Assembly: GCA_002269645.1 (NCBI GenBank) | Contig: NIVC01002894.1 | Location: 1 to 59,205, forward strand | Direction: 5' to 3' | DNA length: 59,205 nt | Origin: Macrostomum lignano | Taxonomy: Eukaryota | Shown here: one piece after another, positions 1-47,099 of the stretch | Layout of the letters: each line of letters begins with the position of its first letter | Numbering within the stretch: the first letter of the stretch is position 1 | Notes under the pieces: generated by a model | Database searches by the model: none | Told to the model about the DNA's origin: nothing | Seen by the model: only the letters and a program-made list of their open reading frames with translations | Made by a program: the position numbers and the translations under genes

Positions 1-296
1 AGAAGCAATGCAAGGGGCGTGTTCCCACTCTCTAAAGTTCTTTGTATCCTTCTTTGAAAGTCATTGGAACTTATCAGTATAGGAAAACTTATGCACCTGC
101 GTAGGCATAAAAGGTGAGCAAGGTGCACAAAAGAGGCACTACAGTGGCCTAGTTCGTGCGTGTTTGGAAATTTTGGAAACCTATTTACGCCGTACATGTA
201 CACCTTACGCACATCTAATTCATGTGACTAAAACATCAAGCTACGTTTTAATCTCAGATTCTAATTTGTTGTCCACCTCCCTCCCCTACTCCGCAG

Positions 297-2467
297 GTAG
301 CCGTATCCATAGAAATCAGCCGAGTCGGCTCGGACTCCGCCCAGCGCAATTCTCTCTGGCCGTCATACCGCGCCATCTCGATCGCGGCCGAGCGTCGCTG
401 CCAGCAGACTTTCACTCTGCGCTACAATCTGCAGCCGGACACCGAGGAGTGGGCCAACGCCTGGTTCCCTCACGTGGCCATTCTGAACGCCAGCGTCGAG
501 GTCAATCTTGGCCGAGTGTCGCCGCTGTCTAGCAGGCAGCCAGGCTACCGGCTGCTGTCCATCGGCCGAGAAGTGCGCTGTGCAGTTTGGCCGATGCTGA
601 CCCCGCGTTTGGCTCCTTGCCAGCCGCGGCCGCCGCCACAGACAGACCGGATGTTGTTCTGCGTCGGTTTGCCATTTACTGGCAAACTGAATTCGTAGAG
701 ACTTATCGGAAGCAGATTGGCCTGGCTAAGTCTGTGTGTTTGAGCATCAACGCATTGGCCGACGCCTGTCTAGTGCCGGAGCTGGGCGACAGCATGGATA
801 AGTCCGACACTAGAGAGAGAATTGGTCGCTACCTGCTCAACAATTGCTCAGAGATCCTGTTCGCCTTAGCCACTTTCGCCATGCAGCACAGGCTGGATGT
901 GATCATGGACATGTGCAACGCCTCTCCATTCACCAGGCGCCTCCGGCTTAACCTATTTCGACCGGCTGGCTACGCCTCCAAAGCTATTATCTTCTGTCCC
1001 GGCCCGAAAACTGAAGCCGGCTTCCGGCAGAAATCCTTGGCTAGATTAGGCCTCAAGGAGCCTTGCGGAGCTTATTATCAGCTGGCTGCTAATTTAGTTT
1101 ATCCTCGGCTGTATCAGGCTAGCCAAGCCGCTTCCGCCTCAGCTGCGGCGTCTGCTACATCTAGCGACTTGTTTGACGATGTCCGGTCCTACTGCGACAT
1201 TCCCCAGTCGATGCTGAACGATCGCCAGACTGACATCAATGCCGAAGCCGCGTCTAGAGGTTTCACTCCGCAGCCGGAGGAGGAACTGGACGAGGTGCTG
1301 CTTGAAGTGTGCCAGAAATTCGGATTAGATTACGTGGCCGAGTCTTGCGCCGATGAAGCTGTTCAACCAAGTGTAGAGACTGCGCCTGACCCAGCTAAGA
1401 AACCAGCGCCAGAGCACAGCCCAGCCACAGATTCTCGGCGCTCCAGTCAGGACCGACGCGACTGCGCGCCTCATCTGCCCCAGCCTACTCAGCAACACCA
1501 GCATCGGCCTCATCTCGAGCACAGACTCGAAGCATCCGCCTTGTCCCACGATCGCCACCGCGACCCGGCCAGATCCAGGCGATCCTTGGATGGCGACCGG
1601 GAGCGTAGTCGAGAATCGAATCGGTCGCATCATTCGCAGCATTCTTCTTATCGATCGCATCACTCCCGATCGAGATCCCGATCGCGCGACATTGCTCATC
1701 ATCCTCAGCATCATCAGCGTCCACCGCCACCACCGCCAGTGCGTCCGCATCCTCCTCTGCCGTCTGCGTCGCATCGAGATCGTCGATTCGAATCGTCGTC
1801 GTCAAGCTCAGCTAGCGGTTACCATGGCAACGATCGATGGAGAAGCAGCAGTCGCGGAGACGGTGCTACAATCGATAGGAAACCGCTGCCCACTGTTATC
1901 GGCAACAGTATTAGCAGCGGCAGTAGGAGTAGCCATGGTACATCTTTCAATCATAGAAGCTTGTCAAGAACAGCCGAGGTTCGCGATCGAGATTTTGATC
2001 GTCGACGCCAGTCGTCATCCTCGGCTGCTGCAGACCGGTCAGAGCCGTCTCTGGATCATTTCTATTCGCAGGCACATCTGGGCAGCAGGATACCTCAAGT
2101 TGCTCCGTACGGGCATGACAGGAGCAGTAGCAGCATCAACAGCAACAGTGGCGGCCTTAGCTCTCTGCGGCCATATCAGCATCGAAATAATCCGGCATTC
2201 TTCTCGTCCTCAGCGTCGCCAAGGCAACCGCCGCCGCCGCCGCAGCAGCCAGCAATCGGAGCCATCGGTGCCATGTCGGCAGCTAACAAGCGGACGGGCC
2301 AGTCTCTATGGGAGAAGCTGCATCCGCCCCCGGTTGCTTCCGGCTACGCCGCTGCCAGTCAGCCGCAGCGGCAGCCCGAGCTCGAGACCGCAGCCAGCTA
2401 CCACGCTCGATCGCTTTTACCTTCGCCGTCTGCTCCAGCAGCTGCTGCTAATCGAGAAAACTTCTGA
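297..2467 (+). CDS. Terminal coding exon of an unidentified protein (globular N-terminal part, then an R/S/H/P-rich disordered tail); apparent -1 frameshift near 575-590
   Basis: Pyrimidine-rich acceptor ctccgcag ends at 296. The frame from 297 reads VAVSIEISRV...RYNLQPDTEEWANAWFPHVAILNASVEV...REVRCAV. The 626-codon ORF 587-2467 continues in the -1 frame. No family motif recognised. Confidence 0.5.
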
Positions 2468-3303
2468 AATATTGACAGAGATGACGCTGAAAGGCGAAAA
2501 TTTAATCTTCAAAACTATAACTATTTCAGTACCCATGTGGACTGGACTAAATCATTTTTAGTTCGCATTTATATGAACTTTCGTGTCTCTTTGCTAAAAA
2601 ATCCAGTCTGTAAGCTGACTGATTCAAAACTGTATTTACATTTGCTCCTGTCAGCAGTCTGTAGTGATTATTATTTTTGTACAAGCTCACTGCTGCCAGT
2701 TTTGCTGAGACTGTTTGTCTTGTGTAGTTATATAATCAAACACAACTATTAATCCTAATAAATATAGTGGTTCAAGACTGCCAGCTTGTGATTATCCGTC
2801 ATCCTGTTGTTTAATTTGGAACAGCTATGGTCTGTTGAAATCTCAGTTGAGAGTTGAAGTGTTCTGTCTGTTTTTTGTTCAGTTTTTTGGGTTATTAAAC
2901 TCGTAAAATCCAAAATAATTGCGTCAGGTGCCAACAACAACCCTCCTGAGAAATATCAAGCGCTGGACGTGTTGCTCTCCGCAACCGCAACTCAGTCCGT
3001 CACTGGTCTTCCATATTTTTGTGCTTTTTTGTGCATGAAGACTACAACGCGTAGTGAGAACTTCGTTTCTTGTCTTCTCCCTAGCTAGGCTCGCACTCGC
3101 GGTTTTCAGTGGTAAATTACACGTAGATACAAAAATGGACTGCTTAGAAAGAACTGATAAAGAAAGGCCTAAAAACTCGAACATGTGGTTTTTTCGAACT
3201 GCACTGGCCTGATTACTTCTGCTGGTACAACAAGGTACAATAAAGATTAGGGCTTTATTTTTAATCCAAGCCTGAAGCAGCAAAAGGCCGCAAAAGACGA
3301 GAC

Positions 3304-5962
3304 ATGGCGTGTAGAAGTCTGCACACGGCATCATCGAGTTCGCAGTTGGAGACTGTGGCTGATTTAATCAGAGCCGGGGCAGATATTGACGAGCAGACGC
3401 CCGACGGCAGTTTCACACCCCTGCACTTGGCCGTGTATCACGGCAACGACAAAGTAGTTGCTACCCTGATCCGAGCCGGCTGCAATGTTGACTTGCCAGA
3501 CACTGCCGGATTTACCCCGGTGCACACAGCCGTTCTGAAAGGTCGCACCGCTATTCTCCGCCAACTGGTCAAGGCCGGAGCCAATCTAAACACGCACTGC
3601 TGCATGGGCAACACTCCGCTGCTCGCGGCCATCTCTCAGCGAAGAATCGCCGCGTTCAAGGCGCTGATCGAAGCGCAAGTCGACGTTAATCAGTGCTGTT
3701 CTGATGTGTCAGCATCGGCGTCGCCTCTTTTCGCTGCAACTCTCGGTGGAGACCAAGAATTTGTAAAGCGCCTGGTAGAAGCTGGCGCGTCCATCAATTT
3801 CCAGCAGCCAAACAACGGACTGACAGCTTTGCACGCCGCTGCTTTAACTGGCAATGCGAAACTCGTCAACTATCTGGTGGGCGTAGGCGCAGAAGCTGGG
3901 CTGGCGAACTTTCAAGGCATCACGGCCGCTAATATGGCCGACATGCGGGGCGATCACCGGGTTGCTGCCCGGCTTAACCTTGCCGACACAGAGCCAACGG
4001 TCTCAGACTCGGACCCGGCTGATCATGCTGAAGAACCCACAACCGAATCACTTCCTGGTGACAAAGGACTCGAAGAACTTCGTGAATTCAGCGTCACATT
4101 GTCCAATGCAATGTGCGCGGCCGGCTTCAAAGCCTTGAACGCCAGTTTGCAAAGCGGTGCTGCATTAGTTTTGCAAGACATCCTTCGAAGGTACTATGGT
4201 ACTGAAGATCTGTACGTGTTTGGAAGCTTCTCAGACGGATGGGGCAGCTGCTTGAGGACCTTGAATGGCAGAATCAGCCGTGACTCCGACATTGACGTCA
4301 CTGTGTTTCAGCCCGAAGCTCCACTCTGTTTGCGTGCCATGGATTCTGCTTTTTTCGCCGACTGCAACAACTGCAGGCACCTGGAAGTCGAATACGTTGA
4401 CGGGCACGCTCGCTATGGAATCGATGGTAGGAATTAATTACTAGTACATGTAGCTCAAAGGTTTACCGATAATTTTTTAGCAAACTTGTATCTTATATCT
4501 GACGACGTACATTATTTCGCTTTTTAGCCTCGGGTCCCAATGCAGCTCTGCTCGCAAACTACCCGCTGATTACTGCAATAGACTTAATCAAGGCTTTAAG
4601 ATGCTGCCGCTATCCCCGCATCGAGCTGTTGCAGCCCGACTACAGAAACCGGAAGTGTCAGACAACTGAGATGCCTCAGCGCATTCTGCAGCAACTCAGA
4701 GACGAGGCTCTCGGCGACTCTCCAAAGTGCCACGCGGTCGTTGCGGCACCTCCAGACGAGCCTCCGGCAGCTGCATGCGGGTGAGCACAACCCTGCTGGA
4801 GAGAGCCGTCATGCACAGCCTCACCACGGTGCAGGGCCAGTTCTTCATCCTTCTAAAGTTCCTCATCAAGAAGGTGATCAGCAGTCGAGTGAGCGGTCTG
4901 AAGACGTACATGGCCAAGAACCTGCTGTTCTACATGCTCGACGAAACACCGGCAGCGGACTGGGAGCCGCAGAACTTGCTGGAACTCGTGCGGCAGTCTC
5001 TGCAGCTGCTGGTTGAGATGATGGAGAGCTCAGACTCCGAGCATGTTTGCATGAAGCACTTCTTCCTGCGCGATGCCAATGTGTACTTTAAGAAAGATCA
5101 CGACTTGCAGAGTGTCATTATTGACTGTGTGCAAGCAACAAGCCGAAAACTGTTGGTAGTGACGAAAGACTTTAAAGACTCGTTGCGAGACAACACGTCT
5201 AACGTGATTCAGTTCCACCCGTTTTACTACGCAGCTCAGCTCATCCGGAGCGTTGGCACTACACATTCGGGTTACTTTTCAATCTTACCTTTGGTGAAGG
5301 ACTGCATCGTGAGACTAGGAAGCGGCTTCACAGAATCCACAAAGGAGCAACAGTTGGAAGATTTGCTTCATCAAATAAACAAACTTCCTGAACCGTCGGC
5401 AAAAACAACAAAAGAATGCTTGAAATTTTTGGCCTATTTAAAATTCGGAGTACCTTTGAACAGTAGCAACGTTGGTTTGGCGAGCTCAGCCAGTCCCGGG
5501 ATCCCCTGCGCCATTGGATGCCGAAGCCAAGACGTCGACGAACGAAAACTGACCGCAGAGTCGGCCAAGCAGATGGTGTGGAGCCATCTCAGCAGCAACG
5601 ACTCAGCCTGGAAGTTCGGCCTCTTGCTCAGACGTGACATTCGTCTGGACTTTCTGCCGTCCGACCTGACGGATCTTATCACCAAGAAAACTGGAGGCGT
5701 TAGCGTCGATGCATCCTACTACTTTTTAGACTTCTCGGCTCTTTGCGAGGCACTTAAAGCGCTTTACCTGGACTCGCTAGGTGTCCCAGCTGCCTGTGCT
5801 CCGCTGATGCGCAGCGGCATGTCCGATTTCTATGAGGTTGACCTGCTGCCCCAGGATCAAGGCACCGCTGCAGCTGGCGGTGTTGCCCCGGCTCCGCTTC
5901 CGGATTTGTCTGTGCAGTTTGGAGCTCTGAAGATGGTGCGTCTTTGGCAGCAGCTGAGCTGA
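3304..5962 (+). CDS. Ankyrin-repeat + Mab-21/cGAS-like nucleotidyltransferase (cGLR-like), about 850 aa; exons 3304-4426 and 4528-5962, with a -1 frameshift near 4750-4775
   Basis: 6-7 ankyrin repeats (TPLHLAVYHG, TPVHTAVLKG, TPLLAAI, SPLFAATLGG, TALHAAALTG). NTase motif VFGSFSDG...DSDIDV. Phase-1 intron G/gtagga...tttttag (4427-4527) joins to IDLIKALRCCRYP...KCHAVVAAPP. The Mab-21 helical part then reads RVSTTLLERAVMHSL...FFILLKFLIKK...GLKTYMAKNLLFYMLDE...W...LLELVRQSLQLL...MKHFFLRDANV. Confidence 0.85.
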
Positions 5963-5989
5963 GCTTAGTTGACATAATTAAAAGATTAG

Positions 5990-6230
5990 CTAACTTTAGG
6001 ACTTTTGACTTTAGATAAGCGAGGAGATAAGAGAGGAGAGGAGTGGGAAGAGAAGGGAAGATGAGGGGACAAAAGAGAGAATAATGAAGAGGAGAATGGA
6101 GAGAGGAAGGGGAGAGAGGAGAGAGGCGAGATGAGAGATGAGAGGTTAGATGAGGGGAGAGAGGAGAGAAGGGATAGGCGACCCCGGAGGAGCAAAGATA
6201 GGCGACTTGAGAAGAGACTCAAGCGGGCCA
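5990..6230. repeat. Purine-rich (GA/GGA) low-complexity tract
   Basis: Degenerate gagag/ggaga runs. Confidence 0.8.
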
Positions 6231-6261
6231 GATTGCTATTAATTGTGAAGTTTCATGGATC

Positions 6262-6310
6262 GAGGGCCGGATAGAGAGGGCTTCGCGGGACGCATGTTTG
6301 CCGACCCCTG
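6262..6310. mobile_element. Right end of a hAT (Charlie-like) non-autonomous element; partner end not seen
   Basis: gagggccggatag...cgcgggacgcatGTTTGCCGACCCCTG is the reverse complement of a CAGGGGTCGGCAAAC-type hAT terminus with gggcc-rich subterminal motifs. Confidence 0.4.
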
Positions 6311-8064
6311 AAGTAGACTATGCGACTCCGCACTGTCGGGTATTAAGTTAGGCACTAAAACAGATCATCATATTCACTATCTAATCTAACAAATAAAAAG
6401 CTTTTCTCACGCGGCAGGGACTTATTTTCCGTTCTTATGCAATTTTTACAGCCAGACAGCTGGGCACTGACCGACGACAACGAAGACTTGCGTCACTACA
6501 TCCGGATGTTCAAGGAATTTTGACTGACGCGTTCGCGGCCAACCGAGCGCGCTTTGCCAGTTCGCTGAGGCTGCGCAGCAGGTGGTGAGAAGAACCGAAG
6601 TAAATGCACTTTTAAGAAAAGAATTTGTAAGTACAAAATGTCCCTAAATTGTTTACCATTCCAGCCAGAAATTGTAGAATTTGTGCAGAGAGGATTTTTA
6701 CCGGCCGACTCAACAACAAGCGCTGATGTTGCTGACCAGCTTGAAGAGGATGACTTGGATCGATCTGAACGTTGATAAATTTTTGTTGGTGGCCAATGTT
6801 TTATATTTGACAGACTTTTGATTAACCGCACATAATGACAATTAAAATCAATTTAGTTAGACTTTGATTTAACAATATTGTTTTTATTTTTAACAATAAA
6901 TAAACTGTGAAACACATTCGAGCTTATATTGAATAGCTTGTGCACGTTTTGACAAGTTTCCGTTGAAAAGTACATTGCTGACTTTGCCGGCTTTTAAAAA
7001 TGCTACTATAGATTTAAAAAAACATATTTTGTTAATAACATACTTAAGTAATGACAAAAAATCACAAATATCGCCCTAATTGGATTAGGATCAAAGTTTC
7101 TTGACACACTGGTCTTGACACACTGGGGCCTCTAGTGATAATTAATAATTAAATTATAATAATTAATATTATAATTTTTACCGCATACGAATGAGCAAGG
7201 CGTAACGATATGAGCGATGGAAAAATTGATAACAGAATATCGCGCATCCATTTGAAGCATATGAAAGGAGCTCTTTTTATTGGATTTTTTATTATTTCTG
7301 TCTAGAAGTGTTCCGACACTTTCCCTAGTTTGTTTCTTTTGTTTCAGAATACAGCTTATAAAATCATTTAAAAGTTGTAAAGAAAAACTGTATTATTTAA
7401 AATAGCGTTATCACAGAGACGAGAGTAGATGATTGTGCTTTAATCCCGAATCACCGACATGATTTATTGTAAAAAAGGGGTCAGATTCTTTCAAACAGTT
7501 TCCTAGAAACCCAGACTTCTGATTTTATGGCAGTTCTAATCTTCATTTTTGACAATACAATTATGCTCTGTTGGCTCCAAACGAACGCAGAAGTCGTTTA
7601 AAACGAAAAAGATAAATTGCACTAAATACATTTCAAGAATTGACAGAAATGAAATTGGCCATGTTTTGCGTAATATGAGCCGATTATAAATATTTATAAC
7701 AATAACAATAAGTTGCACTACTGCATGCATGCTACTAGTTGGCTAATAAATTTTTCCTCAGTAGTATGTAACGTACGATGAGAGGCACAATGATATCGAC
7801 AGAGCGACAAAGTCCGTGACACCTTTAAAGTAAAAGTAATCGTATTTGCTGTAGGCACAATTTGCTGGGCTTATTTGTTTAGCCAAAATTTAGCTTTAAA
7901 ATTTGTCTCTAGTTCAAACTAGTTGCCTTCGCAGAAGTTAATAAGTAGACTGATTAAATTGCTTTAAAGTACAAATATATGCATTTACAATAGCCAAGCT
8001 TATTGTACTTACGACTCTTCCCATCTGATCCCATGTACCTTTTACGCTGGACTCAGTGGTGGCG

Positions 8065-8275
8065 CTGGATTGGCGCTAAAATCTAGACTGCGGAGCTGGA
8101 TTGGCGCTAAAATCTAGATTGCGGAGCTGAATTGGCGCTAAAATCTAAACTGCGGAGCTGGATTGGCGCTAAAATCTAGATTGCGGAGCTGGATTGGCGC
8201 TAAAATCTAAACTGCGGAGCTGAATTGGCGCTAAAATCTAGACTGCGGAGCTGGATTGGCGCTAAAATCTAGACT
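8065..8275. repeat. 31-bp minisatellite, about 7 copies
   Basis: Unit ctggattggcgctaaaatctagactgcggag; period 31 (8070, 8101, ...). Confidence 0.95.
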
Positions 8276-8400
8276 CACCTATATGAGTACAAACTATAAA
8301 TTCTTTCGATTTTTAGAACTTTTATCCTTCATTTTTCGAACTATGCAGTGACTGCACTTTTCGTTCACAGGCATCAGTTCACAGTTTACCATGTAGTCTT

Positions 8401-11400
8401 TCAGCTGCTCAGTTTTGGCGATCGATCATTCCTGTTGACCGACCGACCCTCTTTAATTGATCGGTCACTGCCAATTCGATTGCGCACCACCATGTAGGTT
8501 GGCAGCTGGATTGTCCGGGTCACCGGGTTCACCTCAAACACCGGCTCGTTTGTCCAAATCTGTTGCTGTAATAATTTTGATTTGAGAAGTGTTTGAGTCA
8601 TTTTTGGATGCGTTGGCGGTGAGTTGTCGACAATGTACTAGTGTGCGACTGACTGGACTGAGTGGTTTTATGATCGAATCAAATCGATTCTTTTGGCGAT
8701 CCCAGGGTCTAAAAATAGCATATACCACAACTTTAGGAAAACTCTGTGTCTAAAAATAGCATATACCACAGCTTTAATGAATCCTTGTGTCTAAAAATAG
8801 CACATGCAACAGTTTTCAGAAATCCCTGCGTCTAAAAATAGCATATACCACAACTTTAGGAAAACTCAGTGTCTAAAAATAGCAGATGCCACAGCTTTAA
8901 TGAAACCTTGTGTCTAAAAATAGCACATGCAACAGCTTTCAGAAATCCCTCCGTCTAAAAATAGCATATACCGCAGCTTTAAGGAATGCCCGAGGGTCAT
9001 CCCAAAAGTTTCAGCAAAGGCCTATTAATTTTCAACAAACGAGTGTCAGAACAATGAACATGTCAAAAACCTTCAAAATAACTTCCGTTGACTTGAATTG
9101 TGCGCTCCCAGCGGCCAGGCAACTTCTGAACGCTGTCAGCAGCGCCAGATTCGCACAGGTCTTTTGCAATGCGGCCGACCTCGCTGAACAGGTCATCAGG
9201 GCAATGGAAACGACGCCCTCGGAGCTGGTTCTTAAGCTTCGGAAAAAGGTCGAAATCGCAGGGACTGAGGTCTGGGGAGTAAGGAGGATGAGGCAGCACC
9301 TCTCACTGGTAGTCCCGCAGTAGGTCCTGCACAATGCGGGCTGTGTGCGAACTGGCATTGTCGTGCAGAAGGAGTGGACCAAGTTCCAGGGTCTGTGGCC
9401 GCTTTTTGCGCAAGGCAGGCCGAAGATGGTGAATAATGAAGCTCGACGAGGGGATTCCGGACAGCTCAGCCATTTCTTCGCATGTCTAACGACGATCGAT
9501 GTTCAGCAGCCCTTGGATCAACTCGATGTTCGACTCTGTGCGAGCTTCTTTTGGCCTTCCTCGTCCTCGACATCATCCTCGACATCAGAGCGGCCATTCT
9601 TGAATCGACTGTACCAGTCATACACGGCTCGCTGGCTCATCGCATTTGGCCCATGGGCCTGCAGCAACTGACGGTGAATTTGAGCTGCAGGGACACCACG
9701 AAGACATTCCGTTTTAATGTATGAGCGCTGCTCCAAGTTGAACGGAAATTCCATTTTATCGTTGTCGGCCGATGTTTGATTTAGTATCTCACAAAATGTT
9801 TTTTAGAAAACAGAATTTTGAAGCTAGAATGCTAAAAACTTACTCAGACACCCGAAATATGCTCATCTTTCGTGTGGTATAAGTGCTATAGTCCTAAAAG
9901 TTGTCTATGGCACAAAATCATTCGATTGCTGAAACTTTTGGGATGACCCTCGTGCCTTATCTAAATATAGCAAACGCCACGATTTTACCGTAGTCCCGGG
10001 TCTAAGAACAGTACATCCCATAAGTTTTGTAGGAATGAATCCCAGAATCTAACTAAACAGCAAACTGATATCCTTGAGTCAAGGAATACTCTACACAAAA
10101 AATTAATTCGTCAGAGCCTCGCGCTTACTTCGGAATTCTCCGGTCGCCATTTGAGCACAGCCTCATCCTCGCCGAATCTTCTCGAGCAGGAGACAATGCA
10201 GCCGCTGGGCGAGTCCAGTCTGCTCAAAGGGTTAAAAGGGGAAAGCTTGCAAAAAAGAATTTGGTAACTTTCGATTGCACTTTAGCATGTAGGGACGTCC
10301 AAGGTTAACCTCCCAGATCCTCAGTTGCTGGGCCAGTCTCCCAGAGTGTCAGTTGCTGGGCCAGCCTCCTAGATCCTCAGTTGCTGGGCCAGCCTCCCAG
10401 AGAGTCAGTTGCTGGGCCAGCCTCCCAAATCCTCAGTTGCTGGGCCAGCCTCCCAGATCCTCAGTTGCTGGGCCAGCCTCCCAGAGAGTCAGTTGCTGGG
10501 CCAGCCTCTCAGATCCTCAGTTGCTGGGCCAGCCTCCCAGATCCTCAGTTGCTGGGCCAGCCTCCCAGATCCTCAGTTGCTGGGCCAGCCTCCCAAATCC
10601 TCAGTTGCTGGGCCAGCCTCTCAGATCCTCAGTTGCTGGGCCAGCCTCCCAGATCCTCAGTTGCTGGGCCAGCCTCCCAGATCCTCAGTTGCTGGGCCAG
10701 CCTCCCAGAGAGTCAGTTGCTGGGCCAGCCTCTCAGATCCTCAGTTGCTGGGCCAGCCTCCCAGAGAGTCAGTTGCTGGGCCAGCCTCCAGATCCTCAGT
10801 TGCTGGGCCAGCCTCCCAGAGAGTCAGTTGCTGGGCCAGCCTCTCAGATCCTCAGTTGCTGGGCCAGCCTCCCAGATCCTCAGTTGCTGGGCCAGCCTCC
10901 CAGATCCTCAGTTGCTGGGCCAGCCTCCCAAATCCTCAGTTGCTGGGCCAGCCAGCCACCCAGATCCCTTGTTGCTGGGCCGCCACCGCCTTCCCAGCAG
11001 CTCACCTAGCAGGTATCAGGCACACTATCGCAGACTCGGCCACCTTGTTCCTGACAACCAGCTCCAGATCGCGGCTGTAGGCCACCCGACCCCCTCCCTG
11101 ATCTGCGGAATTCCTTTCTTCCTCGTTTTTATCTTCCTCCTCAGCAACAGTTTCCAAGGAAGCAACTGTCGGCGTTGACGGCGGAGTCCTGGCCGCCGCC
11201 CGCCCGCCAGTGTCGAACACTTCGCTGTCCGTCTCCGAGCCGCTGCTGCTGCCGCCAGCCTCCTCATCAAGCTCGAATCCGTCCTCGCCATCGTTCAAGT
11301 TTCTCACATCGAACACGATCAGATCCCCGGAGCCGGTGCCCACCCACAGCTGCCTTCGGCCGCTCCTCCGCCGCGTCCCCGTAGCCAGCAGCGAAGTCAC

Positions 11401-12134
11401 CCTGAAGGGATTCGCCGAGCCGGCCTGGCCGGTGCTCTCCGCAGCGTCGGCATCTAACTCGCTGAGCCGCTGCAGCGGGCGGGTCATGGTTGGATGTCGA
11501 ACCTCAGCCGGCAACTGGAGCCGTCAGAGCTCCACAGCTCTACAACTGGGGAGCCGCGGACCGCCAACCAGACACCGCAGGAGCGACCGCCGTCATGCAG
11601 ACAGAGCACCGAGTCGAACGGGCACTCGGACACTCGGACACGACAATACGCGTCCAGACTGTCCGATCGTAGCAACTGGACGAAGTTGCCGCAGGCCACC
11701 CACAGGACGCCGCCGCCATCCTCGGGCAGCTGAGCCAGCGCAACTGCAGTGGCCGGGCAGGCGCCGCCGAGGTTGATGAAGAACACGGAGGAGTCTGGCT
11801 GTTCTCGTCCGATGTCCTCCAGCACGGCCAGGGAGCCGCTGGCCAGAGCTGCGAACACTCGATGACGCCGGGGGCCGCCGATCGGAGCTGTGGACGGCTG
11901 CGCCTCCGAGCAGATGGCCAGGACTGAGTCCGGCATCCGGAACTCCCACAGCTGCTCGCTGGGGGATTGATTCGTAAATTAATCAATCAATGAATTAGTT
12001 AGTCAATCAATCAGACAATCAATCAATCAATCAGAATAATCAAAACAATCAATCAAGCAAGCAAGAAATAAAATAATCAATCAATCCATCAATCAATCAT
12101 TCAATCAATCAATAGATCAATCAGCCAACCAATA

Positions 12135-12205
<71 letters not shown>

Positions 12206-12210
12206 TAATA

Positions 12211-12241
<31 letters not shown>

Positions 12242-12430
12242 TAATCAATCAATCAATCAATTAATTAATCAATCAATCAGTCAATCAATCGATCAGTCAA
12301 TCAATTAATCAGCCAATCAAATCAATCAAATCAATCAAATCAATTAAATCAATCAATCAAATCAAATAAATCAAGTCAATCAAATCAATCAAATCAATCA
12401 ATCAATCAATCAATCAATCATCAATCAATT

Positions 12431-12485
<55 letters not shown>

Positions 12486-13154
12486 TAATTAATCAATCAA
12501 TCAATCAATCAATCAATTAATCAATCGATCAGTCAATCAATCGATCAGTCAATCAAATCAAATCAATCAATCAATCAATCATATAGTCATTAATCGGACA
12601 AAAAACTCTAATGTATCGAGATCTACAATGTATAGCAAACGGTCAACTAATAGATATATTATAACAATCTGTTTTCAAAAATATAAATAACTAATTGATT
12701 AATCAATCAAATAAATCGTCTACTTTATCACCATACATCCATAGCTACACATAGATGGCATATTAATTAACAAACCAGCTCAATCAAAAAAACCATAAAT
12801 CAATCACATTGCTCACCCGCTGCCAGCATCCAGGGCCGCGATGAACATGCCCAATGTGCCGAGCAGGACCACCTGGCAACTGTCCAACGAATAGGAGCAG
12901 CTCACCTGGGACTCAATCTGCGGGATTGATTCGATCAAGAAATGCTACTTTGGTTGATTTTATTCTGAGTTTGGGAGGAGTTTACGAGTTCGATATCTCA
13001 CCTCTACGCCCAGGCTGAACATGAGGTTGTCTTCGATTCTCAGGCGGCACACCTGGCTCCTGCCGCTGTCGCCGTAGCAAATCCACACACTGCCGTCTGG
13101 ACTGCTCAGACCGCTGCTCACCAGGGGCTGATTGGGGCTCTCCATATCGCCCCG
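8401..13154 (-). CDS. C-terminal WD40/beta-propeller-like exons of the TBC1D2-like gene
   Basis: Repeated blade-like segments (VWICYG, VVLLGT, RVFAALASGSLAVL, VLWVACGNFVQLL, VWLAVRGSPVVELW, LWVGTGSGDLIVFD) in frame with the TBC exon through phase-matched splice sites; TGA at 8403-8401. Confidence 0.7.
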
Positions 13155-16100
13155 CTGTTGGGTAAGATTGAGGGTGAGATTAGATGGTGAGATTTGATAG
13201 AAGCTGAGATTTAATGGTGAGATTGGATAGAGGCTGAGATTTGATGGTGAGATCGGATAGAGGCTGAGATTTGATGGTGAGATTTGATGGTGAGATTTGA
13301 TGGTGAGATTTGATGGTGAGATTGAATAGAGTGAGATTTGAGGGTGAGATTGGATAAAGCATGAGACTGGATAGAGTGAGATTTGAGGGTGAGATTGGAT
13401 AAAGCATGAGATTGGATAGAGTGAGATTTGAGGGTAAGATTGGATAGAGTGAGATTTGAGGGTAAGATTGGATAGAGTGAGATTTGAGGGTGAGATTGGA
13501 TAAAGCATGAGATTGGATAGAGTGAGATTTGAGGGTAAGATTGGATAGAGTGAGATTTGAGGGTAAGATTGGATAGAGTGAGATTTGAGGGTAAGAGAGT
13601 GAGATTTGAGGGTAAGATTGGATAGAGTGAGATTTGAGGGTAAGATTGGATAGAGTGAGATTTGAGGGTGAGATTGGATAAAGCATGAGATTGGATAGAG
13701 TGAGATTTGAGGGTGAGATTGGATAAAGCATGAGATTGGATAGAGTGAGATTTGAGGGTGAGATTGGATAGAGTGAGATCTGAGAGGTGTCTACACACGG
13801 CTGCTCTCCAGAGTTCCATTAGGACACTCCCTACTCCATCGAAATTAATTTCTTCCCACAACAAGGACACATGGGACAGACGGACATTCGGCCCAAATCC
13901 CATGTTTGGGCGTGTCCGCAACTCGCAGCTCGAATATCTGGCGATGGGCCTCCCATGAATAAAAATAGATTTGTTAGACAAATAAGCAGCCCCGTTTCTC
14001 ATTGCCGTATCGATTGATAATACGGCTGTAGTTTAGCCATCTGAGCAAAAGTATCAAGTTTCGGATCGAATCGGTTCTATATATAGCTTTTATTTTGTCT
14101 AAAATTGTGTTCATTGATCGATAAAAACGTGTCTTCTGTAGTTTCCCTGTTGTTTTTAATATAAATCTTGTTTTTCAGTTTGTTTTGTAGAAAATTACTA
14201 ACCATATCAGTCAGTGTACATTCAATGTCATTTTAATTTGGGTTTTTTTAATTCCTACCCTATCAGTCAGTGTACGCTTGTACGAGTACATTCAAGGTCG
14301 TTTCAATCTGCTTATATAAATTCATACCCTATCAGTATACATCCAAGGTTATTTTAATTTTCTTTAAATTCCTTTTTTACAAGGTATCAGTCAGTGTACA
14401 TTCAAGGTCGTTTTAAATTTGTTTTAGATTTCTACCTTATCAGCGTACATTCAAGGTCATTTTAAATTGTTTTAGATTCCTACCCTGTCAGTGTACATTC
14501 AAGGTCGTTTTAAATTTGTTTTTATTCCTTACTCTATCAGCCAGTAGTGAACATTCAAGGTCGTTTCAATCTGTTAAATAAAGCTTGAAACCCGCTAAAG
14601 CTACATTAAATGTACACTGAAGGTCATTCCACCCAGTACCCTCACATCCACAGCTGCTTCGTCCTCTTCCGCCTCCTCTTCTTCATCCTGAAGCGCTCTC
14701 CGCCGCAGTCGCTTCCGCCTCTCATCAGCCTCCGCCAGCGCCGCGATGTACACACCCCGCCTGGCGTCCAGCTCCCGTCTAGAAGGCACCCCGGCGTCGG
14801 CTCCCGCAGCAAAGGCCGTCCTGGCGAGCCCGTCAACATCGAATGCCAATCTGGCTGCGGCTTTGAGATGACGCCACAGCCCGATGGTGTCCGTCTGCCT
14901 CAGTAATGCCGCCTCGCTAGACTTCAACACCGCCAAGGCGAACCGGAACAGCACCTTGGGTCCTTCCAGTAGGAAACAATCCCACAGTCTCAGCAGAGTT
15001 TCAAACGGCAACGCGTCAAAGTAGATGGCTAGAAACCAGTTCAAAGTCACGGTGCCAACGTCGATGTCCAGATTGGAAATGTGCTCGTGCAGATTGGGCA
15101 TCTGGCGACGAATCAGGTCCTTCAGCACGAGCTGGTCGGCCTGGGCGCCCAGCAGGCTTCCGGTGAAGTACAACGGATGAAAGTAGCACTCGGTGACCGC
15201 TACGAGCAGCCAGAAGGCGTCTTCCTTGCTGAGGAAGAGCAGGCCCATGCCCGCAATAAAGTTCATGCCTTGGCAATAGCCCACGCTGGGATTGTGCAAG
15301 CAGAAGGCCTGCAGAATTTCCTGGAGCTTCTGAATCTGTAGGAGGTATATTGCACAGAATAGTAATTTTATTTTTTAGAAATTAATTTCACACGGCCAAG
15401 GATTAGCCTATTAAAAAAATTGCGCCTTAACCAGTGTACATTTATTCAATCACTTAGGCTGCTCAATCCCTTACTCTAGCTAGTGCACATTCAAGCCGCT
15501 CAATCCCTTACCCTAGCTAGTGTACATTCAAGCCGCTCAATCCCTAACCCTAGCTAGTGTGCATTCAAGAACATGCATTCCCTTACACTAGCCAGTGTAC
15601 ATTCAAACCGCTCAATCCCTTACCCTAGCTAGTGTACATTCAAACCGCTCAATCCCTTACCCTAGCTAGTGTACATTCAAACCACTCAATCCCTTACCCT
15701 AGCTAGTGTACATTCAAGCCGCTCAATCCCTTACCCTAGCCAGTGTACATTCAGAACATGCAATCCCTTACTCCAACGAGTACATTCAGCAACCATCTCC
15801 ACCCTGCTTCCGCTTACCCCTTCGCTATCAGACGACTCGAAGCGCACATTCCCGGGCATTGTGCGCATCAGATCCAGTGAAATCTGCTTCCGATGCTTGG
15901 CCACAATATCCGACTCCGTGGCCCGTTGCACCAACCCGGAATAGTACTGTTGGCCTCGCACAGACCGGATCTCTTGCACCTGGGCGTGGATTAGCTCACG
16001 CCACACGGCTGACCGGTACATCCGCGGAATGCCGCCTCGTATTAAGCTTTTAAGCTCGGTCTGTGAAAGGACACCAATTCCATTTAGTGAGTGCGCCTAA

Positions 16101-19100
16101 TCGATTGTGTTTATTAATAGCTTATTTTACCGTCTTTGTGAAAGATCTATTAGAAGCAATGAATGACTTCCAATGCCTCTGATGCTCGTCGTATCTGTCT
16201 AGAGTTGTAGCGTAGTGCTCGTGCAGCTGCCTGCTGATGTAGTGCAGCTGCATTGATTCGCTCTCCTGGCTGTGGCGGAAGCCGTAGCTGTCCACGTGAC
16301 CGTCTGGGGACACCAGGCTGCGGGTGGGAGCAAAACTCGATGAGAACGAGTGCAGTTGTCTAGGAGCTGGGGGCTGGGGTGAGGCACTGAGGGTAAGGCA
16401 CTGTTGCTATGGTCTCGGGTTCATGTTGCTATGGTTGGGGATGAGACATTGGGGGTTAGGCACTGTGGATGAGGCCATGAGGCACTGGGGGTGAGGCATA
16501 CTGGAAGTGAGGCACTGGGATTGAGGCACTGGGGTGATCAGGCACTGGGGTGAGACACTGAGGGTGAGGCACTGGGGTGAGGCACTGGGATTGAGGCACT
16601 GGAGCTGAAGTAATGAGCGCTGAGACTGAGAGCCATAGTAATTAGTAGTTGCGTTAAAAAATTGAAATAGCAAAAGAAAATCATGGCAATATAGGATTAT
16701 CCTATTGATAACTCATTGATAGGCCAATCCCCAGAGCAGTTATTGCTAGCAGAAATTGCTGATCAATAAACGAATTCAAACTAGTTGTGTTCCGCCAAGC
16801 CTTTGAAAGACTCAGGGCTGCTAGTACTAAGAAAACACATTGGGACTTGCCTTTCAGAGACGGAAGTGGCACAGAGAGAAGGATTTTGCCCACACAATGC
16901 GTCTTTAGTGTCCTAAATCAACCCCGTATAAAAGTGCATGGACGAAGTGGAAATGCCCTTGTGTGTGAATTTTTCTGCGATTGTTTCTCGTTATTACTAA
17001 GCTTGAAGAACTATAAGTTCAAAACAAAAATTACCTTTCAAAAGTTGGCAGCCGTGGATTAACAACGCGAGCCTCTTCTAGGAGCTCCCTAAGCCGTTCC
17101 TTGTGACGCCCGCCGCCATATAGATTGAGTTCGATGCCGTCTGACACGTCTCCAGTTGGCACAGTGATGCAGGATTGCAACAGGAACAAGTAGTCTCGTT
17201 TCCAGTTCTCCAGCTGCAGCTTGTGCTCGCGAAACAATCTTTAGGGTTATTGGGATTAGTAGCTTCATATATGCCTTTTACTAGTTATTGTAGCACAGGA
17301 ATTCCGTTGAATTTACGAGCTATTCTTAGGTGTCCCTTCGTGAAATGTGCATTCTCTTGGGCCACTCCCTTTACTCTGGCGTTCCTTCGTAAATTGTACA
17401 TTCTCTTTGGCCACTCCCTATATTCTGGCGTCCCTTCGTCAATTGTACATTCTCTTTGGCCACTCCCTTTAATCTGGCGTTCCTTCGTCAATTGTACATT
17501 CTCTTTGGCCACTCCCTATATTCTGGCGTCCCTTCGTCAATTGTACATTCTCTTTGGCCACTCCCTTTAATCTGGCGTTCCTTCGTCAATTGTACATTCT
17601 CTTTGGCCACTCCCTTTAATCTGGCGTTCCTTCGTCAATTGTACATTCTCTTTGGTCACTCCCTGTACTCTGGCGTCCCATCGTGATGTACTTCAGATCC
17701 GGTTTTCATATTTAGACATTCAACCACCTCTCCAACTAGCTGTAAAACGAAAGTAAAAAGCAAATCTGATTACTTGTCCTGATTTCGAAACTTCTCCTGT
17801 TCCATGTGTCTCAGCGAGGTGATTCGTCGAACTTCGCTGTTCACAAATCGATTGTTATTCTGCAGTACGCGGCACTGCTCCTCTAGGTGGCGCAGGTTGT
17901 CCGATTTCTCTTTTATCCAGTCTAGCATGGCTCTGTGTGGAAATTCAGAGATTGGGTTGGCTGTACTTCAAGTTACTTTTAAGTACAACAATAGGAAACG
18001 GAAGAGCTACTTAGCAAGTTTTCAGTCATTAACAAGAACTCCAAACAATCAAAGCGCTGGAGTTCTGGCTGTTTAGGTTAGGATTAGGTTTTTTAGTGTT
18101 AAGGTTATTTTTAGAGACTGCAGACAATTTTTGGTCCTTAAAATGTGATCCTGTCAGTCAAAGCTCAAAAGTCGCATAGACCCATTGATCACCATACATG
18201 CACGAGCAATCTCTTACAACTAAATAAAACCGCCTCATCTCTTAGGCCTCCAAGTACTTTAGGAATCTACAGCAGAAACTGTTGCTAAGTCGGTTTTACT
18301 GGAAAAATCTGGTTGAAAAAATACAGCAGACTTCGAAGGCTTGTCTCTAAGCATGAGAATGCACTCACGATTCGGACTTGAACCTCGGCGGCCCGGCGCG
18401 AGTGACGTTAAATCTGAGGGCTCTGAAAGATTGGCGTTGTGTCGGGAAATCGTGACTTCTTTAGCTGGGAAAGGTATTATTAAGACTAGCTTCTTTTTGA
18501 CAGCAAAGGATTAAATTACTGTGCCAGTCTGGCAAGGTCAACAACAGAAGCATGAACTCAACAGAAATAGATTGGATAGCATCGAATATCTATGATAGAA
18601 TTGAGGTTAAATGTTTAGTCATTCCAAAAGTGCAGTCTCGATCGAGCATGCCAACTGTTGTGCAGTGTGAAATTGTTGCTCAAGTGGTTAGGAAAGTGGG
18701 AAACATGCTCGAGATTATGGGAACAAAGACTACAATGTATACATCTAGTGCAAAATGTGTTATTTAATTATCGAATTGTTTTACCCGTTATCTTTTTGAG
18801 CATTCTCCAGCTGCTCAAGTCTATGGGATGGTTAAAGAAGCAGGTTTGCTATTAAGGAACTCAGCAGAATTACGGAACAATGTTTACTTATATAATGCTA
18901 AATGCATTCGCGAGACAGGGAGTCTTCAGTTTTCAACGTCTTATTTTAGCAAACATTCAAGATATCTTACATTCTTGAATTCACAAGTTAAAAAAGCTGA
19001 AACTGTACTTTTGGAGAGCAGCGATGCTCACAACACAGTTGTTGTGAGCCCGTATGCTCACAATACGGGCTGGTAATTGTGCTTTTCTAAACAGATTTTG

Positions 19101-22100
19101 CAAAGGTTTTATTTTTCGGCAAAATGTTCAATGGGATTTGGCCCCCGGACTCTCTTAAGTAGTCCATGATCTGGCCATAGACAAATTTGGTTGAAAATCT
19201 GGATTCGAAAGGATTGTCTAGGAAAAGTACAGAACACACGACAAAGTTTATCACCGTTCTGCGAGTTTAGTGTTTGTTAAACTTTAGTTGTCCATAGTTT
19301 AAATAGTGTATCAATTGAGTATTTCCTCCTCACCTGCTCAGTTTCAAGTCCAGTTCGGCGATCAGGGTGTCACGCTTTCTCAAAACCTCTTTCAACGCGG
19401 AATTCTGCTTTTGCAGGTCCTCCATTTCATGTCTGATATCGCTGTCGCTAAAAGTACAAACAGTGAATTATACTTAAATATTTAAAGTGCATAAATGCTG
19501 TGTACTTTCTACCACATTCCCATACCGATATCTCTGCCTCATAGCTCACCGTCTCAAAACTCTCTGCCCCGAAGCCACCCACCCAAAACTCTCTGCCCCG
19601 AAGCCACCCACCCCAAAACTCTCTGCCCCGAAGCCACCCGCCCCAAAACTCTCTGCCCCGAAGCCACCCACCCAAAACTCTCTTCCCCGAAGCCACCCAC
19701 CCCAAAACTCTCTGCCCCGAAGCCACCCACCCAAAACTCTCTTCCCCGAAGCCACCCACCCCAAAACTCTCTGCCCCGAAGCCACCCACCCAAAACTCTC
19801 TGCCCCGAAGCCACCCACCCCAAAACTCTCTGCCCCGGGGCCACCCACAGTCCCAAAACTCTCTGCCCCGAAGCCACCCACCCCAAAACTCTCTGCCCCG
19901 GGGCCACCCACAGTCCCAAAACTCTCTGCCCCGAAACCACCCACCCCAAAACTCTCTGCCCCGAGGCCACCCACAGTCCCAAAACTCTCTGCCCCGGGGC
20001 CACCCACAGTCCCAAAACTCTCTGCCCCAAAGCCACCCACAGTCCCAAAACTCTCTGCCCCGAAGCCACCCACCCCAAAACTCTCTGCCCCGAAGCCACC
20101 CACCCCAAAACTCTCTGCCTCGGGGCCACCCACAGTCCCAAAACTCTCTGCCCCGAAGCCACCCACCCCAAAACTCTCTGCCCCGGGGCCACCCACAGTC
20201 CCAAAACTCTCTGCCCCGAAGCCACCCACCCAAAACTCTCTGCCCCGAAGCCACCCACCCAAAACTCTCTGCCCCGGGGCCACCCACAGTCCCAAAACTC
20301 TCTGCCCCAAAGCCACCCACCCCAACAGACTCACCCAGCGTCGCTTTTCTTAACCGCGAAACCAGAAGCGGACGCTCCACCAGAGCTGCTGGCTTCAGAA
20401 CGGCAGCTGCTACCCGACCGGTCTCTGGACTCCTGCGCGCTGTCTCGCCCTGAAGTCGTGAAGCACGCCTGCAGCTGAGGACTGCCACCAGCACCTGCTG
20501 GGGTGGAGACGCTGTAACGTTTCGTTGGTTTTGTTTGTTGCTGCTGCTGACGCGACTTGCTGGGCGATTCTTCAAGCAAACTGTCGTAGTTGAAGTCGGT
20601 GCCAATCTCCGAGCCCTGGTCGGAATGCTGCGGCGACGCCTTGGTGAGGCTGACTGAGAAACTTTGCGACATTGACAGGCCGAAACGATTGCTAAGTGAA
20701 TCGCTGAGCTTGCGAGTCACGTTGCCTAGGTAACCTGCGATTAAGGAATGAAGATTTTTCGATTTGGTAAATTAGATTTTTAAGTATAAATTTAGAAATA
20801 GATCTCCAAGATCTCACCTGAATTTTTAAAGATCTCACTTCAATCTCACCGAATCTCATTCAAATCTCACAGAATCTCATTCAAATCTCACCGAACCTCA
20901 TTCAAATCTCACAGAATCTCATTCAAATCTCACCGAACCTCATTCAAATCTCACATAATCTCATTCAAATCTCACAGAATCTCATTCAAATCTCACAGAA
21001 TCTCATTTAAATCTCACCGAACCTCATTCAAATCTCACATAATCTCATTCAAATCTCACAGAATCTCATTCAAATCTCACATAATCTCATTCAAATCTCA
21101 CCGAACCTCATTCAAATCTCACAGAATCTCATTTAAATCTCACCGAACCTCATTCAAATCTCACATAATCTCATTCAAATCTCACAGAATCTCATTTAAA
21201 TCTCACCCAATCTCATTCAAATCTCACCGAACATCATCCAAAACTCACCGAATCTCATTCAAATCTCACCGAACGTGATTCAAATCTCATAGAATCTCAT
21301 TCAAATCTCACCGAACGTGATTCAAATCTCATAGAATCTCATTCAAATCTCCGTAAAATCGCATTGCATTTCGCTTTTTTAGCACATTTTTCTTTTGTAA
21401 AATACTTTCCCAATTAAACTCCCCTTTGCCATGGCAGTCGCTAAAAGTACTTTACGAGTTTTGCAGGACAACTACATGTAGAAATTAAAATTTTTTAATC
21501 CCAAGAAATCAGAGCTTGCTGTGCTGAATAGATCAGATAGTTAGGACTACGAAATAACTGACGACTCGACTCACCGTTCTCAGGGCTCAAATAGAGCAGC
21601 GGGAGGTCTGGAATTTTCCTTCCCGGACTAATCCTGGCCTGAGAGGAACAAGAGAAAACTAAAACGAATCCTTTTCTTCCTAGTGCCTAAAGGCAGTCTG
21701 AAAACTTAATCCCTTTAAAGAAGACTTTTTCGTCTGAGAGCAATTCAGAAACCGCAGAAAAGACTGAAAAACCAACCGTCATCCTCTTCTTCAATAGCCG
21801 ACCGAGTCATCAGAGCGCTGGCGTCTAGAATGCTGATCCGCGACACCCGCCTGTCCGCGCCACCGAAGCTGGCGAAATTTCGCCTTCCATAGCCGAAGCT
21901 GGCGTCGGGCGCGGACTCCCGCTGATTGGTTTAAAACAAATTTAAGCCATTTTACGAGCGTAAAACTTCTAAAACCCTATAGTTTTATTGCCCTCTCCGG
22001 TTGTTTTAAGTAATTCTACTGACACCCACCCCACTCCTTCACACCAGCGGTTTTATTGTTGACCCCTTCCTGTTCAAAATATCCCAATTTAAACCAACCC

Positions 22101-43864: not shown

Positions 43865-44520
43865 GAGACAGGGGCGCCAACTAAGAGCCCCCAAGAAGAG
43901 ACAGGGGCGCCCCCCAAAAGACAGGGGCGCCCACCAAGAGACAGGGGCGCCCACCTAGAGACAGGGGCGCCCCCCAAAAGACAGGGGCGCCTACCAAGAG
44001 ACAGGGGCGCCCACCAAGAGACAGAGGCGCCCACCTAGAGACAGGGGCGCCCACCAAGAGACAGGGGCACCCACCAAGAGACAGGGGCGCCCACCAAGAG
44101 ACGGGGGCGCCCACCAAGAGACGGGGGCACCCACCAAAAGACAGGGGCGCCCACCAAGAGACAGGGGCGCCCACCAAGAGACAGAGGCGCCCACCTAGAG
44201 ACAGGGGCGCCCACCAAGAGACAGGGGCACCCACCAAGAGACAGGGGCGCCCACCAAGAGACAGAGGCGCCCACCTAGAGACAGGGGCGCCCACCAAGAG
44301 ACAGGGGCGCCCACCAAGAGACAGGGGCGCCCACCAAGAGACAGGGGCGCCCACCAAGAGACAAGGGCGCCCACAAAGAGACAGGGGCGCCCACCAAGAG
44401 ACAGGGGCACCCACCAAGAGACAGGGGCGCCCACCAAGAGACAGGGGCGCCCACCTACAGACAGGGGCGCCCAACAAGACACAGGGGCGCCCACCAAGAG
44501 GCAGCGGCGCCAAGAGACAG
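43865..44520. repeat. 20-bp minisatellite, about 32 copies
   Basis: ccaccaagagacaggggcgc units. Confidence 0.95.
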
Positions 44521-46485: not shown

Positions 46486-47099
46486 TTTTTTCAGAATCCT
46501 GATAATACAATGATACTATCTTATATTTTATACATGTAGGATCTGTGACATCTTGTGAAATTCGAGACGTTGTTATGAAATTCGATGATATCCGAATCAT
46601 TCCAATGCATGCACAGACGTTGCAAATTCCTGCGGCTAACACATGTAAAAATAAGTACTCATAATTTCTATTTAATAGCAGAGTATAAGTTAGAATATTA
46701 AAACAATCAGCCTGAGAAATTGGCATTCTAATCAAGGCCGGACCTCATTCAACTGCTCATTTTTGCCAGGCTGGCCAGAGAAAATCAATCTGTTTAACCC
46801 TTTCGACCCTGGCCAAGCCTGCAAAGCAAATCCCCTCTTATCCCCATTTTTGTTTCGACGAAATTCCCTGTCATCACTTAGGAAGGGGATTAAAGAATAT
46901 TTTAAATGAATTCTCCATAGGATTAATGATATCTGCTCCATAGTGGGAAATTGCTGTTGAAATATTTTCCTATGACGAATATGCAAGTTGAACTACAAAG
47001 GGGATTCGTATAGCTGAGGACTATAAAAACGAATTTTTCTGTATTGCAAACCTTTCCTGCAGGTACAAATACATTGGGTTTCTATTGATCTAATTCATT

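Follow-up and report, generated by a model that had tools for sequence, protein, structure and literature searches.

Ankyrin-fused cGAS-like receptors and the Mlig016540 locus

The closest described counterparts of the gene considered here are the animal cGAS-like receptors (cGLRs), which were delimited by Li et al. 2023 through structural homology to cGAS, a G[S/G] loop and the catalytic pattern [E/D]h[E/D]-X50-90-[E/D], beginning 8-20 residues after the GS (PMC9980059). Some of the catalogued cGLRs carry ankyrin or TPR modules, and the ankyrin-fused form (ANK-cGLR) is a recurrent architecture (Fig 1C, S2A), with members in Stylophora pistillata and in the flatworm Macrostomum lignano; for the latter, the examined rows of Table S2 hold at least six accessions with Ank_2, among them PAA86972.1, PAA45980.1, PAA68676.1, PAA67649.1, PAA58690.1 and PAA68216.1 (PMC9980059). 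Apart from Mab21-like proteins, cGLRs are absent from nematodes and from most platyhelminths (PMC9980059), which implies that Macrostomum is an exception within the phylum, and a literature search on STING or cGLRs in Macrostomum, or on the M. lignano clade, returned nothing beyond Li et al. 2023. The window analyzed here is the whole 59,205-nucleotide stretch of the M. lignano contig NIVC01002894.1 (assembly GCA_002269645.1), and the gene in question, copy g2 of Mlig016540 (GenBank gene BOX15_Mlig016540g2), occupies positions 3304-6775 of its forward strand in four exons. From the N- to the C-terminus, the encoded protein consists of ankyrin repeats, an acidic linker, a nucleotidyltransferase (NTase) of the Mab21/cGAS fold and a family-specific alpha/beta extension of ~250 residues. 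On balance, we favor the view that Mlig016540 g2 is a functional ANK-cGLR gene within a large and divergent cGLR-like expansion, whose product is most likely a ligand-switched cGAS-like receptor making a nucleotide messenger. An earlier note, drawn from the letters of this DNA alone, had rightly recognized a flatworm-like genome; its suggestion of an undescribed pattern-recognition system cannot be sustained, since the gene already has a GenBank entry and a catalogue of 2023 includes the ANK-cGLR design, with M. lignano relatives among its members (PMC9980059). The products annotated for this copy and its two sister copies (PAA54515.1, PAA90457.1 and PAA80893.1) were not found among the examined rows of Tables S1 and S2 of that catalogue (PMC9980059).

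The evidence available supports the assignment of the protein to the Mab21/cGAS-like receptor superfamily as an ankyrin-fused member. The NTase and the C-terminal extension were modeled together with AlphaFold2 (pLDDT 79.8, pTM 0.85), and a comparison of the model with the PDB by Foldseek, as the earlier note had advised for cGAS and cGLR structures, found the Mab21 family in 50/50 among the matches listed (best E=1e-5, probability 1.00, target-normalized TM ~0.5), including MAB21L1, cGAS (4k9b, E=1.7e-5), Cv-cGLR1 (8gjw, E=2.2e-5), Sp-cGLR1 (8gjy), MiD51, MB21D2 and Tc-cGLR. Together with the Pfam match to Mab-21_C (PF20266), these results bear out the proposed fusion to a Mab-21-type nucleotidyltransferase. 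The three catalytic acidic positions are intact, as had been claimed, and the motifs are arranged as G307-S308, X20, D329-I-D331-V, X59, I392-D393-L394; the window protein possesses the predicted cGLR fold, the G[S/G] loop and the catalytic triad in the sense of Li et al. 2023. The bivalve and annelid proteins retrieved with the family profile (E ~1e-16 to 1e-9) match both PF03281 and PF20266 in Pfam; there being no significant sequence-profile match to cGAS, homology rests on the fold search, the Pfam Mab-21_C domain and these bridging homologues. The C-terminal extension, modeled alone (pLDDT 70, pTM 0.69), found no assignable known fold in the PDB (best E=0.57, probability 0.11).

The ankyrin part is equally well delimited, with six full repeats counted by eye (residues 3-205) and a capping half-repeat (205-232), in agreement with the 6-7 repeats noted earlier; Pfam recognizes them as tandem 33-residue units through Ank_2 (E=3.6e-39) and Ank (E=4.6e-31). 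On the forward strand, the window has an ATG-initiated open reading frame at 3304-4437, for which an exact look-up as a called gene gave no match, and a second long frame at 4727-5962 in a different phase. Since a single exon encodes the ankyrin repeats together with GS and DxD, the two parts are physically fused, and their union does not stem from joined gene models. The single reading frame described in the earlier note thus holds for exon 1 (3304-4426), which carries the ankyrin repeats, the linker, the GS and the DxD, and fails beyond it, where the 101-nucleotide intron 1 and a one-base deletion in exon 2 after 4763 intervene. Nor does the gene end at 5962 as had been assumed: the TGA at 5960-5962 falls in intron 2, and a tblastn search of the window with PAA90457.1 located two further exons, which take the gene to 6775. 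With three missing bases restored, the coding sequence has 2778 nucleotides and gives a protein of 925 residues identical to PAA90457.1, the product of copy g1 on NIVC01000110.1; the third copy, g3 on NIVC01000561.1, encodes the 921-residue PAA80893.1, and both of these sister copies have an intact frame. GenBank annotates the window gene with a shortened product of 459 residues, PAA54515.1, the sequence of which corresponds to exon 1 plus the frame-0 product of exon 2 up to a false stop; this model was most probably shortened by assembly errors, and the correct product would be that of PAA90457.1. In the gene models of g1 and g3, the ankyrin and NTase parts lie within one coding sequence, and as the annotation is based on RNA sequencing and these models are intact, both parts are placed on one transcript, as the earlier note had required. 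No paralogue of the ANK-cGLR gene was found in the rest of the window.

Relatives of the gene are numerous in the same species. A search with the NTase part recovered 24 homologues with up to 52% identity, 23 of them from M. lignano and about half also with ankyrin repeats, and a profile search with a limit of E<=1e-3 extended the family to 450 proteins. At E<=1e-30 there were 76 clusters (50% identity); all of the strong-match clusters looked up (13/13) were M. lignano. The count of ANK plus Mab-21 paralogues proposed in the earlier note gave at least 31 in which two or more ankyrin repeats precede the core, among the 80 core-motif members listed, which include some weaker non-Macrostomum matches. 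Such N-terminal arrays, ranging from 2 to >16 repeats, are the commonest addition in the family, the other members being without ankyrin repeats, tandem, or composed of a cGLR-like domain, ankyrin repeats and a caspase. The conservation is mosaic: compared with the paralogues, the core keeps 53-83% identity, the ankyrin region 26-32% and the C-terminal extension 18-29%, and S308, D329 and D331 are invariant, and D393 nearly so, among paralogues otherwise 30-50% identical. At the nucleotide level, the block 4620-5070 was compared with NIVC01000561.1 2944-3449, 11774-12318 and 21278-21783, the flanking coding sequence of which is ~50% identical; where residues agree, they also share the codon in 85-95% of cases within the block vs 10-45% elsewhere; judged by this pattern, the core looks like a product of gene conversion or of nucleotide-level constraint. 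Three tandem ANK-cGLR paralogues lie ~9 kb apart on NIVC01000561.1 (1400-4000, 10100-12900 and 19300-22300). Three M. lignano proteins, PAA59752.1, PAA80948.1 and PAA93319.1, join a cGLR-like domain and ankyrin repeats to a C-terminal caspase (Peptidase_C14), an arrangement that may represent a direct sensor-effector fusion or merged gene models. One relative with a Mab-21_C domain (P0021, 347 residues, 37% identity) is filed under a Kangiellaceae bacterium metagenome-assembled genome, on a contig of 1,065 bp, and probably represents an animal sequence that was assigned to a bacterial genome during binning.

Several observations weigh against this reading of the gene. The Pfam comparison recommended in the earlier note, positive for Ank and for PF20266, gave no match above threshold to PF03281 (Mab-21) in the NTase N-lobe, the only signals there being sub-threshold ones to MTPAP-like (E=0.056) and Pol-beta (E=0.32) domains. 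A profile of the family alignment found no match among PDB sequences even at E<=10, and an hhalign comparison with verified human cGAS, which pairs RVSTTLLER with RLSFSHIEKE and KTYMAKNLLFY with SYHVKTAFFH, is overall not significant (E=0.29). With 20 residues from GS to DxD, the spacing reaches the maximum that the published motif allows, the intervening loop holds an invariant DGWG...L...G insert not seen in cGAS, and the GS is preceded by F (V-F-G-S), not by Q or T, which leaves the stricter search motif h[QT]GS unmatched. Regarding function, five M. lignano relatives (numbers 89-93) entered the 140-protein biochemical screen of Li et al. 2023 (PMC9980059), and for them the active column of Table S3, filled for others with entries such as '08, Cv-cGLR1', is blank with double-stranded DNA (dsDNA) or poly I:C (PMC9980059); they were assayed as NTase domains, apparently without the ankyrin repeats, and are not among the 15 active enzymes (PMC9980059). 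One of them, number 91 (PAA57558.1), contains P0004, 46-51% identical to the window protein. Concerning the pathway, the planarian Schmidtea lacks both STING and cGLR (PMC13563047), as do the six cestodes of Table S5, in which M. lignano does not appear (PMC9980059). Finally, it is conceivable that g2 truly carries the frame breaks, a case that would leave the two intact copies unaffected.

Proposed function and competing explanations

Under the favored reading, the protein would have no activity at rest; a ligand would move the GS activation loop to a new position, and the D329/D331/D393 site, with two metal ions, would then condense nucleoside triphosphates into a cyclic di- or oligonucleotide to be read by a downstream receptor. 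That the triad has been retained while the family diverged rapidly speaks for catalysis. The fast-evolving ankyrin array would be the most likely specificity element, and it may bind a protein ligand, pathogen- or damage-derived, or keep the enzyme auto-inhibited or localized. Sensing of a protein ligand through the ankyrin repeats is plausible, and a nucleic acid appears less likely as the activator in the M. lignano clade. Nucleic-acid-sensing cGLRs are more positively charged (PMC9980059), and the NTase core of the window protein is near-neutral to acidic (pI ~6); this charge, and the relatives unflagged with dsDNA or double-stranded RNA, fit a non-nucleic-acid ligand and fit inactivity equally well.

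The main rival explanation, to which we attach an appreciable but limited probability, is a non-enzymatic Mab21 scaffold, comparable to MiD49/51 or shrimp LvMab21, that would signal by protein contacts, its ankyrin repeats and C-terminal extension recruiting kinases, caspases or other effectors with no nucleotide messenger involved. The Foldseek scores for MAB21L1 and MiD51 equal those for cGAS and the cGLRs, the screened M. lignano relatives were not flagged as active (PMC9980059), and shrimp Mab21 proteins bind and activate IKK-epsilon without nucleic acid binding or cGAMP synthesis (PMC12928593); the caspase-fused paralogues hint, in the same direction, at direct effector coupling. Nevertheless, the (near) invariance of the GS, D329, D331 and D393 in dozens of paralogues only 30-50% identical is hard to explain without catalysis, and the non-catalytic MAB21L1-3 have no predicted functional active site (PMC9980059).

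It is rather unlikely, although in keeping with several unusual traits of the protein, that an active nucleotidyltransferase performs a different chemistry, producing OAS-like linear oligonucleotides or nucleotidylating RNA or protein presented by the ankyrin repeats, in place of a cyclic dinucleotide for STING. The weak MTPAP-like and Pol-beta signals as the only ones of the N-lobe, the long invariant insert between GS and DxD, the C-terminal extension with no PDB counterpart, and the reported absence of STING in the other flatworms examined (PMC13563047, PMC9980059) would all suit such an activity. However, the overall fold and the C-lobe are of the Mab21/cGAS type and not of the PAP/TUTase type, the closest outside relatives are bivalve cGLR-type proteins, and the characterized active enzymes of the Mab21 clade all make cyclic dinucleotides (PMC9980059).

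A broader proposal, which we put forward only as a speculation with a small chance of being right, is that M. lignano has developed an NLR-like repertoire of immune receptors from cGLRs. The products of dozens of rapidly diverging ANK-cGLR genes, and of the cGLR-ANK-caspase genes, would recognize protein ligands through their ankyrin arrays, the conserved, gene-converted NTase core would act as switch or signal generator, and the output would pass through a receptor other than canonical STING or directly through the fused caspases; the rest of the phylum is reported to have lost cGLR-STING signaling. In neither part of the protein did Pfam match a NACHT or NB-ARC STAND NTPase with E<=1. The characterized animal cGLRs are nucleic-acid-responsive or auto-active, and the activators of the orphan cGLRs are a question raised by Li et al. 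2023; for protein-type ligands, an obvious group to examine is a clade in which the enzyme regularly carries a variable ankyrin array and occasionally a caspase. M. lignano is suited to such work, as transgenesis and RNA interference are available in it and most other flatworms examined lack the pathway.

Frame breaks and the surrounding contig

Three single-base deletions interrupt the coding frame of g2 (Table 1). The first creates a false stop at 4783-4785, which ends PAA54515.1 at 459 residues, and ~394 codons remain open after this first break; the site is in frame as PPDEPPGSCMRVS in UniProt A0A1I8H1V8, PAA90457.1 and PAA80893.1. The frameshift is thus absent from the sister copies, whereas the earlier note had named a real frameshift in all alleles, with no expression, as a refutation. 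A0A1I8H1V8, 99% identical to residues 1-527 of the window protein in the profile search, crosses the site uninterrupted. Between the window gene and g1, there are 0 substitutions in 3.5 kb and four single-base length differences, all of them +/-1 base in 3- or 4-base homopolymers, the fourth being one additional C in intron 2 at 6182. Over a longer distance, window 1-16775 is 99.86% identical to NIVC01000110.1, with 8 substitutions and 16 indel bases. The Mlig_3_7 assembly was made from PacBio reads with Canu and contains 180 Mb in duplicated blocks at least 95% identical (PMC5730564). The contig is a redundant, poorly polished piece of that assembly, and the three frame breaks are best read as long-read consensus errors in a copy that would be functional, since differences dominated by indels and limited to homopolymers are the signature of such errors and since the assembly is of this type and carries these duplicated blocks. 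That g2 is instead a genuine, recently inactivated pseudogene with three real frameshifts, as three frame-breaking deletions in a single gene and the shortened GenBank product might suggest, is highly improbable in view of the zero substitutions and homopolymer-only differences from g1, the excess of indel bases over substitutions (16 to 8 over 16.8 kb), which is the opposite of real divergence, and the concentration of like errors near the end of a contig from a PacBio-based, heavily redundant assembly, and g1 and g3 would be intact even then. A small extra intron was also considered for the exon 2 break and rejected, as there is no GT...AG pair of suitable length and the sister copies have one base more at this place.

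Table 1. Features of Mlig016540 g2, in coordinates of the window
Feature	Position	Strand	Basis
Exon 1: start codon, ankyrin repeats, acidic linker, NTase N-lobe; residues 1-374 and first base of codon 375	3304..4426	+	Open frame from ATG 3304; donor G/GTAGGA at 4427; identical to residues 1-374 of PAA54515.1 and PAA90457.1
Ankyrin-repeat array, 6 full repeats and capping half-repeat, residues 3-235	3310..4008	+	Pfam Ank_2 E=3.6e-39; Ank E=4.6e-31, 6 separate stretches
Acidic low-complexity linker, residues 236-262, pI 4.05	4009..4089	+	Sequence, pI calculation
G307-S308, G[S/G] activation-loop motif	4222..4227	+	Motif scan; S308 invariant in 19 homologues
D329-I-D331, first two catalytic acidic residues	4288..4296	+	Motif scan; direct sequence; D329 and D331 invariant in 19 homologues
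Intron 1, 101 nucleotides, GT...AG (G/GTAGGA...TTTTTAG)	4427..4527	+	Splice sites; position common to M. lignano paralogues on NIVC01000561.1
Exon 2: remaining NTase core, Mab-21_C, family-specific C-terminal extension; residues 375-844	4528..5935	+	tblastn of PAA90457.1; corrected translation identical to PAA90457.1
D393, third catalytic acidic residue, within I-D-L	4581..4583	+	Motif scan; nearly invariant (D141 in trimmed numbering)
Conserved core block, residues ~406-555, synonymous sites shared	4620..5070	+	~89% identical at the nucleotide level to the diverged paralogues in tandem
Frame break 1: one C missing, CC vs CCC in sister copy	4763..4764	+	Alignment to three paralogues and sister locus NIVC01000110.1
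Mab-21_C (HhH/H2TH-like) domain	4859..5131	+	Pfam PF20266, 28.3 bits vs cut-off 24.1
Intron 2, 516 nucleotides; holds in-frame TGA 5960-5962	5936..6451	+	Donor ATG/GTGCGT at 5936, acceptor TTTTTACAG
Exon 3, containing two 1-base deletions	6452..6584	+	tblastn of PAA90457.1, sister-locus alignment
Frame break 2: GG vs GGG	after 6503 (exon 3)	+	Sister-locus alignment
Frame break 3: CC vs CCC	after 6542 (exon 3)	+	Sister-locus alignment
Intron 3, 80 nucleotides	6585..6664	+	Donor GTGAGAAG, acceptor CCATTCCAG
Exon 4 and true stop TGA at 6773-6775	6665..6775	+	Corrected coding sequence translation = PAA90457.1

Upstream of the ANK-cGLR gene, positions 1-2467 (+), continuing to 3285-3303, hold the 3' portion of BOX15_Mlig023272, an hnRNP-U-like (SPRY/AAA_33) gene whose low-complexity tail is long. 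Within this gene, near the contig start, six single-base indels relative to the sister contig occur within 350 bp (343-683), a cluster that suggests poor consensus quality at the contig end. A0A1I8H1V8 joins the hnRNP-U-like gene to the ANK-cGLR without a change of frame (...LLPSP-GRKRRD-MACRSL...). No canonical splice pair was found in the window for this junction, and the fusion probably reflects a merged gene model or a transcript that is either polycistronic or a precursor. Further along the contig, an exon for a RabGAP-TBC domain, TBC1D2-like, lies at 14601-15299 (-) (Pfam E=5.6e-38); a word-index protein search gave it matches of only ~50% in molluscs and nematodes and none in M. lignano, the entries of which were missed by this search. 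At 39193-42003 (-), a 936-codon open reading frame with TNP-like (P-element/THAP9-type) transposase domains is located between the exons 36452-37798 (+) and 42807-43826 (+) of a gene for an amiloride-sensitive sodium channel (ASC/DEG-ENaC), where a transposon presumably entered an intron; the ASC exon itself had no protein match at E<=1e-20. Much of the 59-kb contig is occupied by >35 minisatellite arrays with periods of 4-171 nucleotides and up to 95 copies (for example, 47099-49552, 10309-10953, 19555-20325, 43896-44511 and 54444-55292), several of which yield long spurious open reading frames in multiple frames.

Comparison with known systems

The nearest described proteins are the ANK-cGLRs of Li et al. 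2023, which have the same layout of N-terminal ankyrin repeats followed by a cGLR NTase and, for those of M. lignano, the same species and lineage-specific clade as the window protein; the screened PAA57558.1 and the window protein have in common the motifs GSFSDGWGS, SDxD and RVSTTLLER. The characterization of these M. lignano proteins is limited to the screen, in which they were apparently expressed without the ankyrin repeats. With cGAS, Cv-cGLR1 (8gjw), Sp-cGLR1 (8gjy), Tc-cGLR (7lt2) and Drosophila cGLR1, the window protein shares the bilobed Mab21 fold (Foldseek E=1e-5 to 1e-3, target-normalized TM ~0.5) and the GS loop and acidic triad at the expected spacing, and motifs resembling the RxSFSxxE and SYhxK of cGAS align with it. 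Nevertheless, it is only 10-15% identical to cGAS and the invertebrate cGLRs, with no significant sequence-profile match; it lacks the H(X5)CC(X6)C zinc thumb of cGAS, and it differs from cGAS and the cGLRs in the 20-residue GS-to-DxD loop with the invariant DGWG insert, in its near-neutral pI, and in the addition of the ankyrin repeats and of the ~250-residue C-terminal extension.

MAB21L1 (5eom) and MiD51 (4nxt) are structural matches to the window protein as good as cGAS and the cGLRs in Foldseek and, together with shrimp LvMab21-1/2/3, offer a precedent for Mab21 proteins acting via protein-protein contacts; these proteins, however, are without a conserved catalytic triad or without synthase activity, whereas the window protein and its paralogues keep the triad. 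Outside Macrostomum, the closest relatives are the bivalve and annelid cGLR-TPR proteins, such as those of Mercenaria (XP_053382747.1) and Sinanodonta (KAL3855470.1), which, like the window family, combine a cGLR domain with a repeat-type protein-interaction module in expanded lophotrochozoan families. The repeats of these relatives are C-terminal TPRs, in contrast to the N-terminal ankyrin repeats of the window protein, and the bivalve and annelid proteins match Pfam PF03281 directly, whereas the flatworm N-lobe does not. In a wider comparison, the NLR/STAND receptors likewise place a variable repeat array on a conserved nucleotide-handling switch domain and form a large, fast-diversifying, tandem-clustered family, as does the M. 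lignano family, some members of which carry a caspase; the central domain of the window protein is a nucleotidyltransferase and not a STAND NTPase, and the two systems are not homologous, their resemblance being an analogy of architecture.

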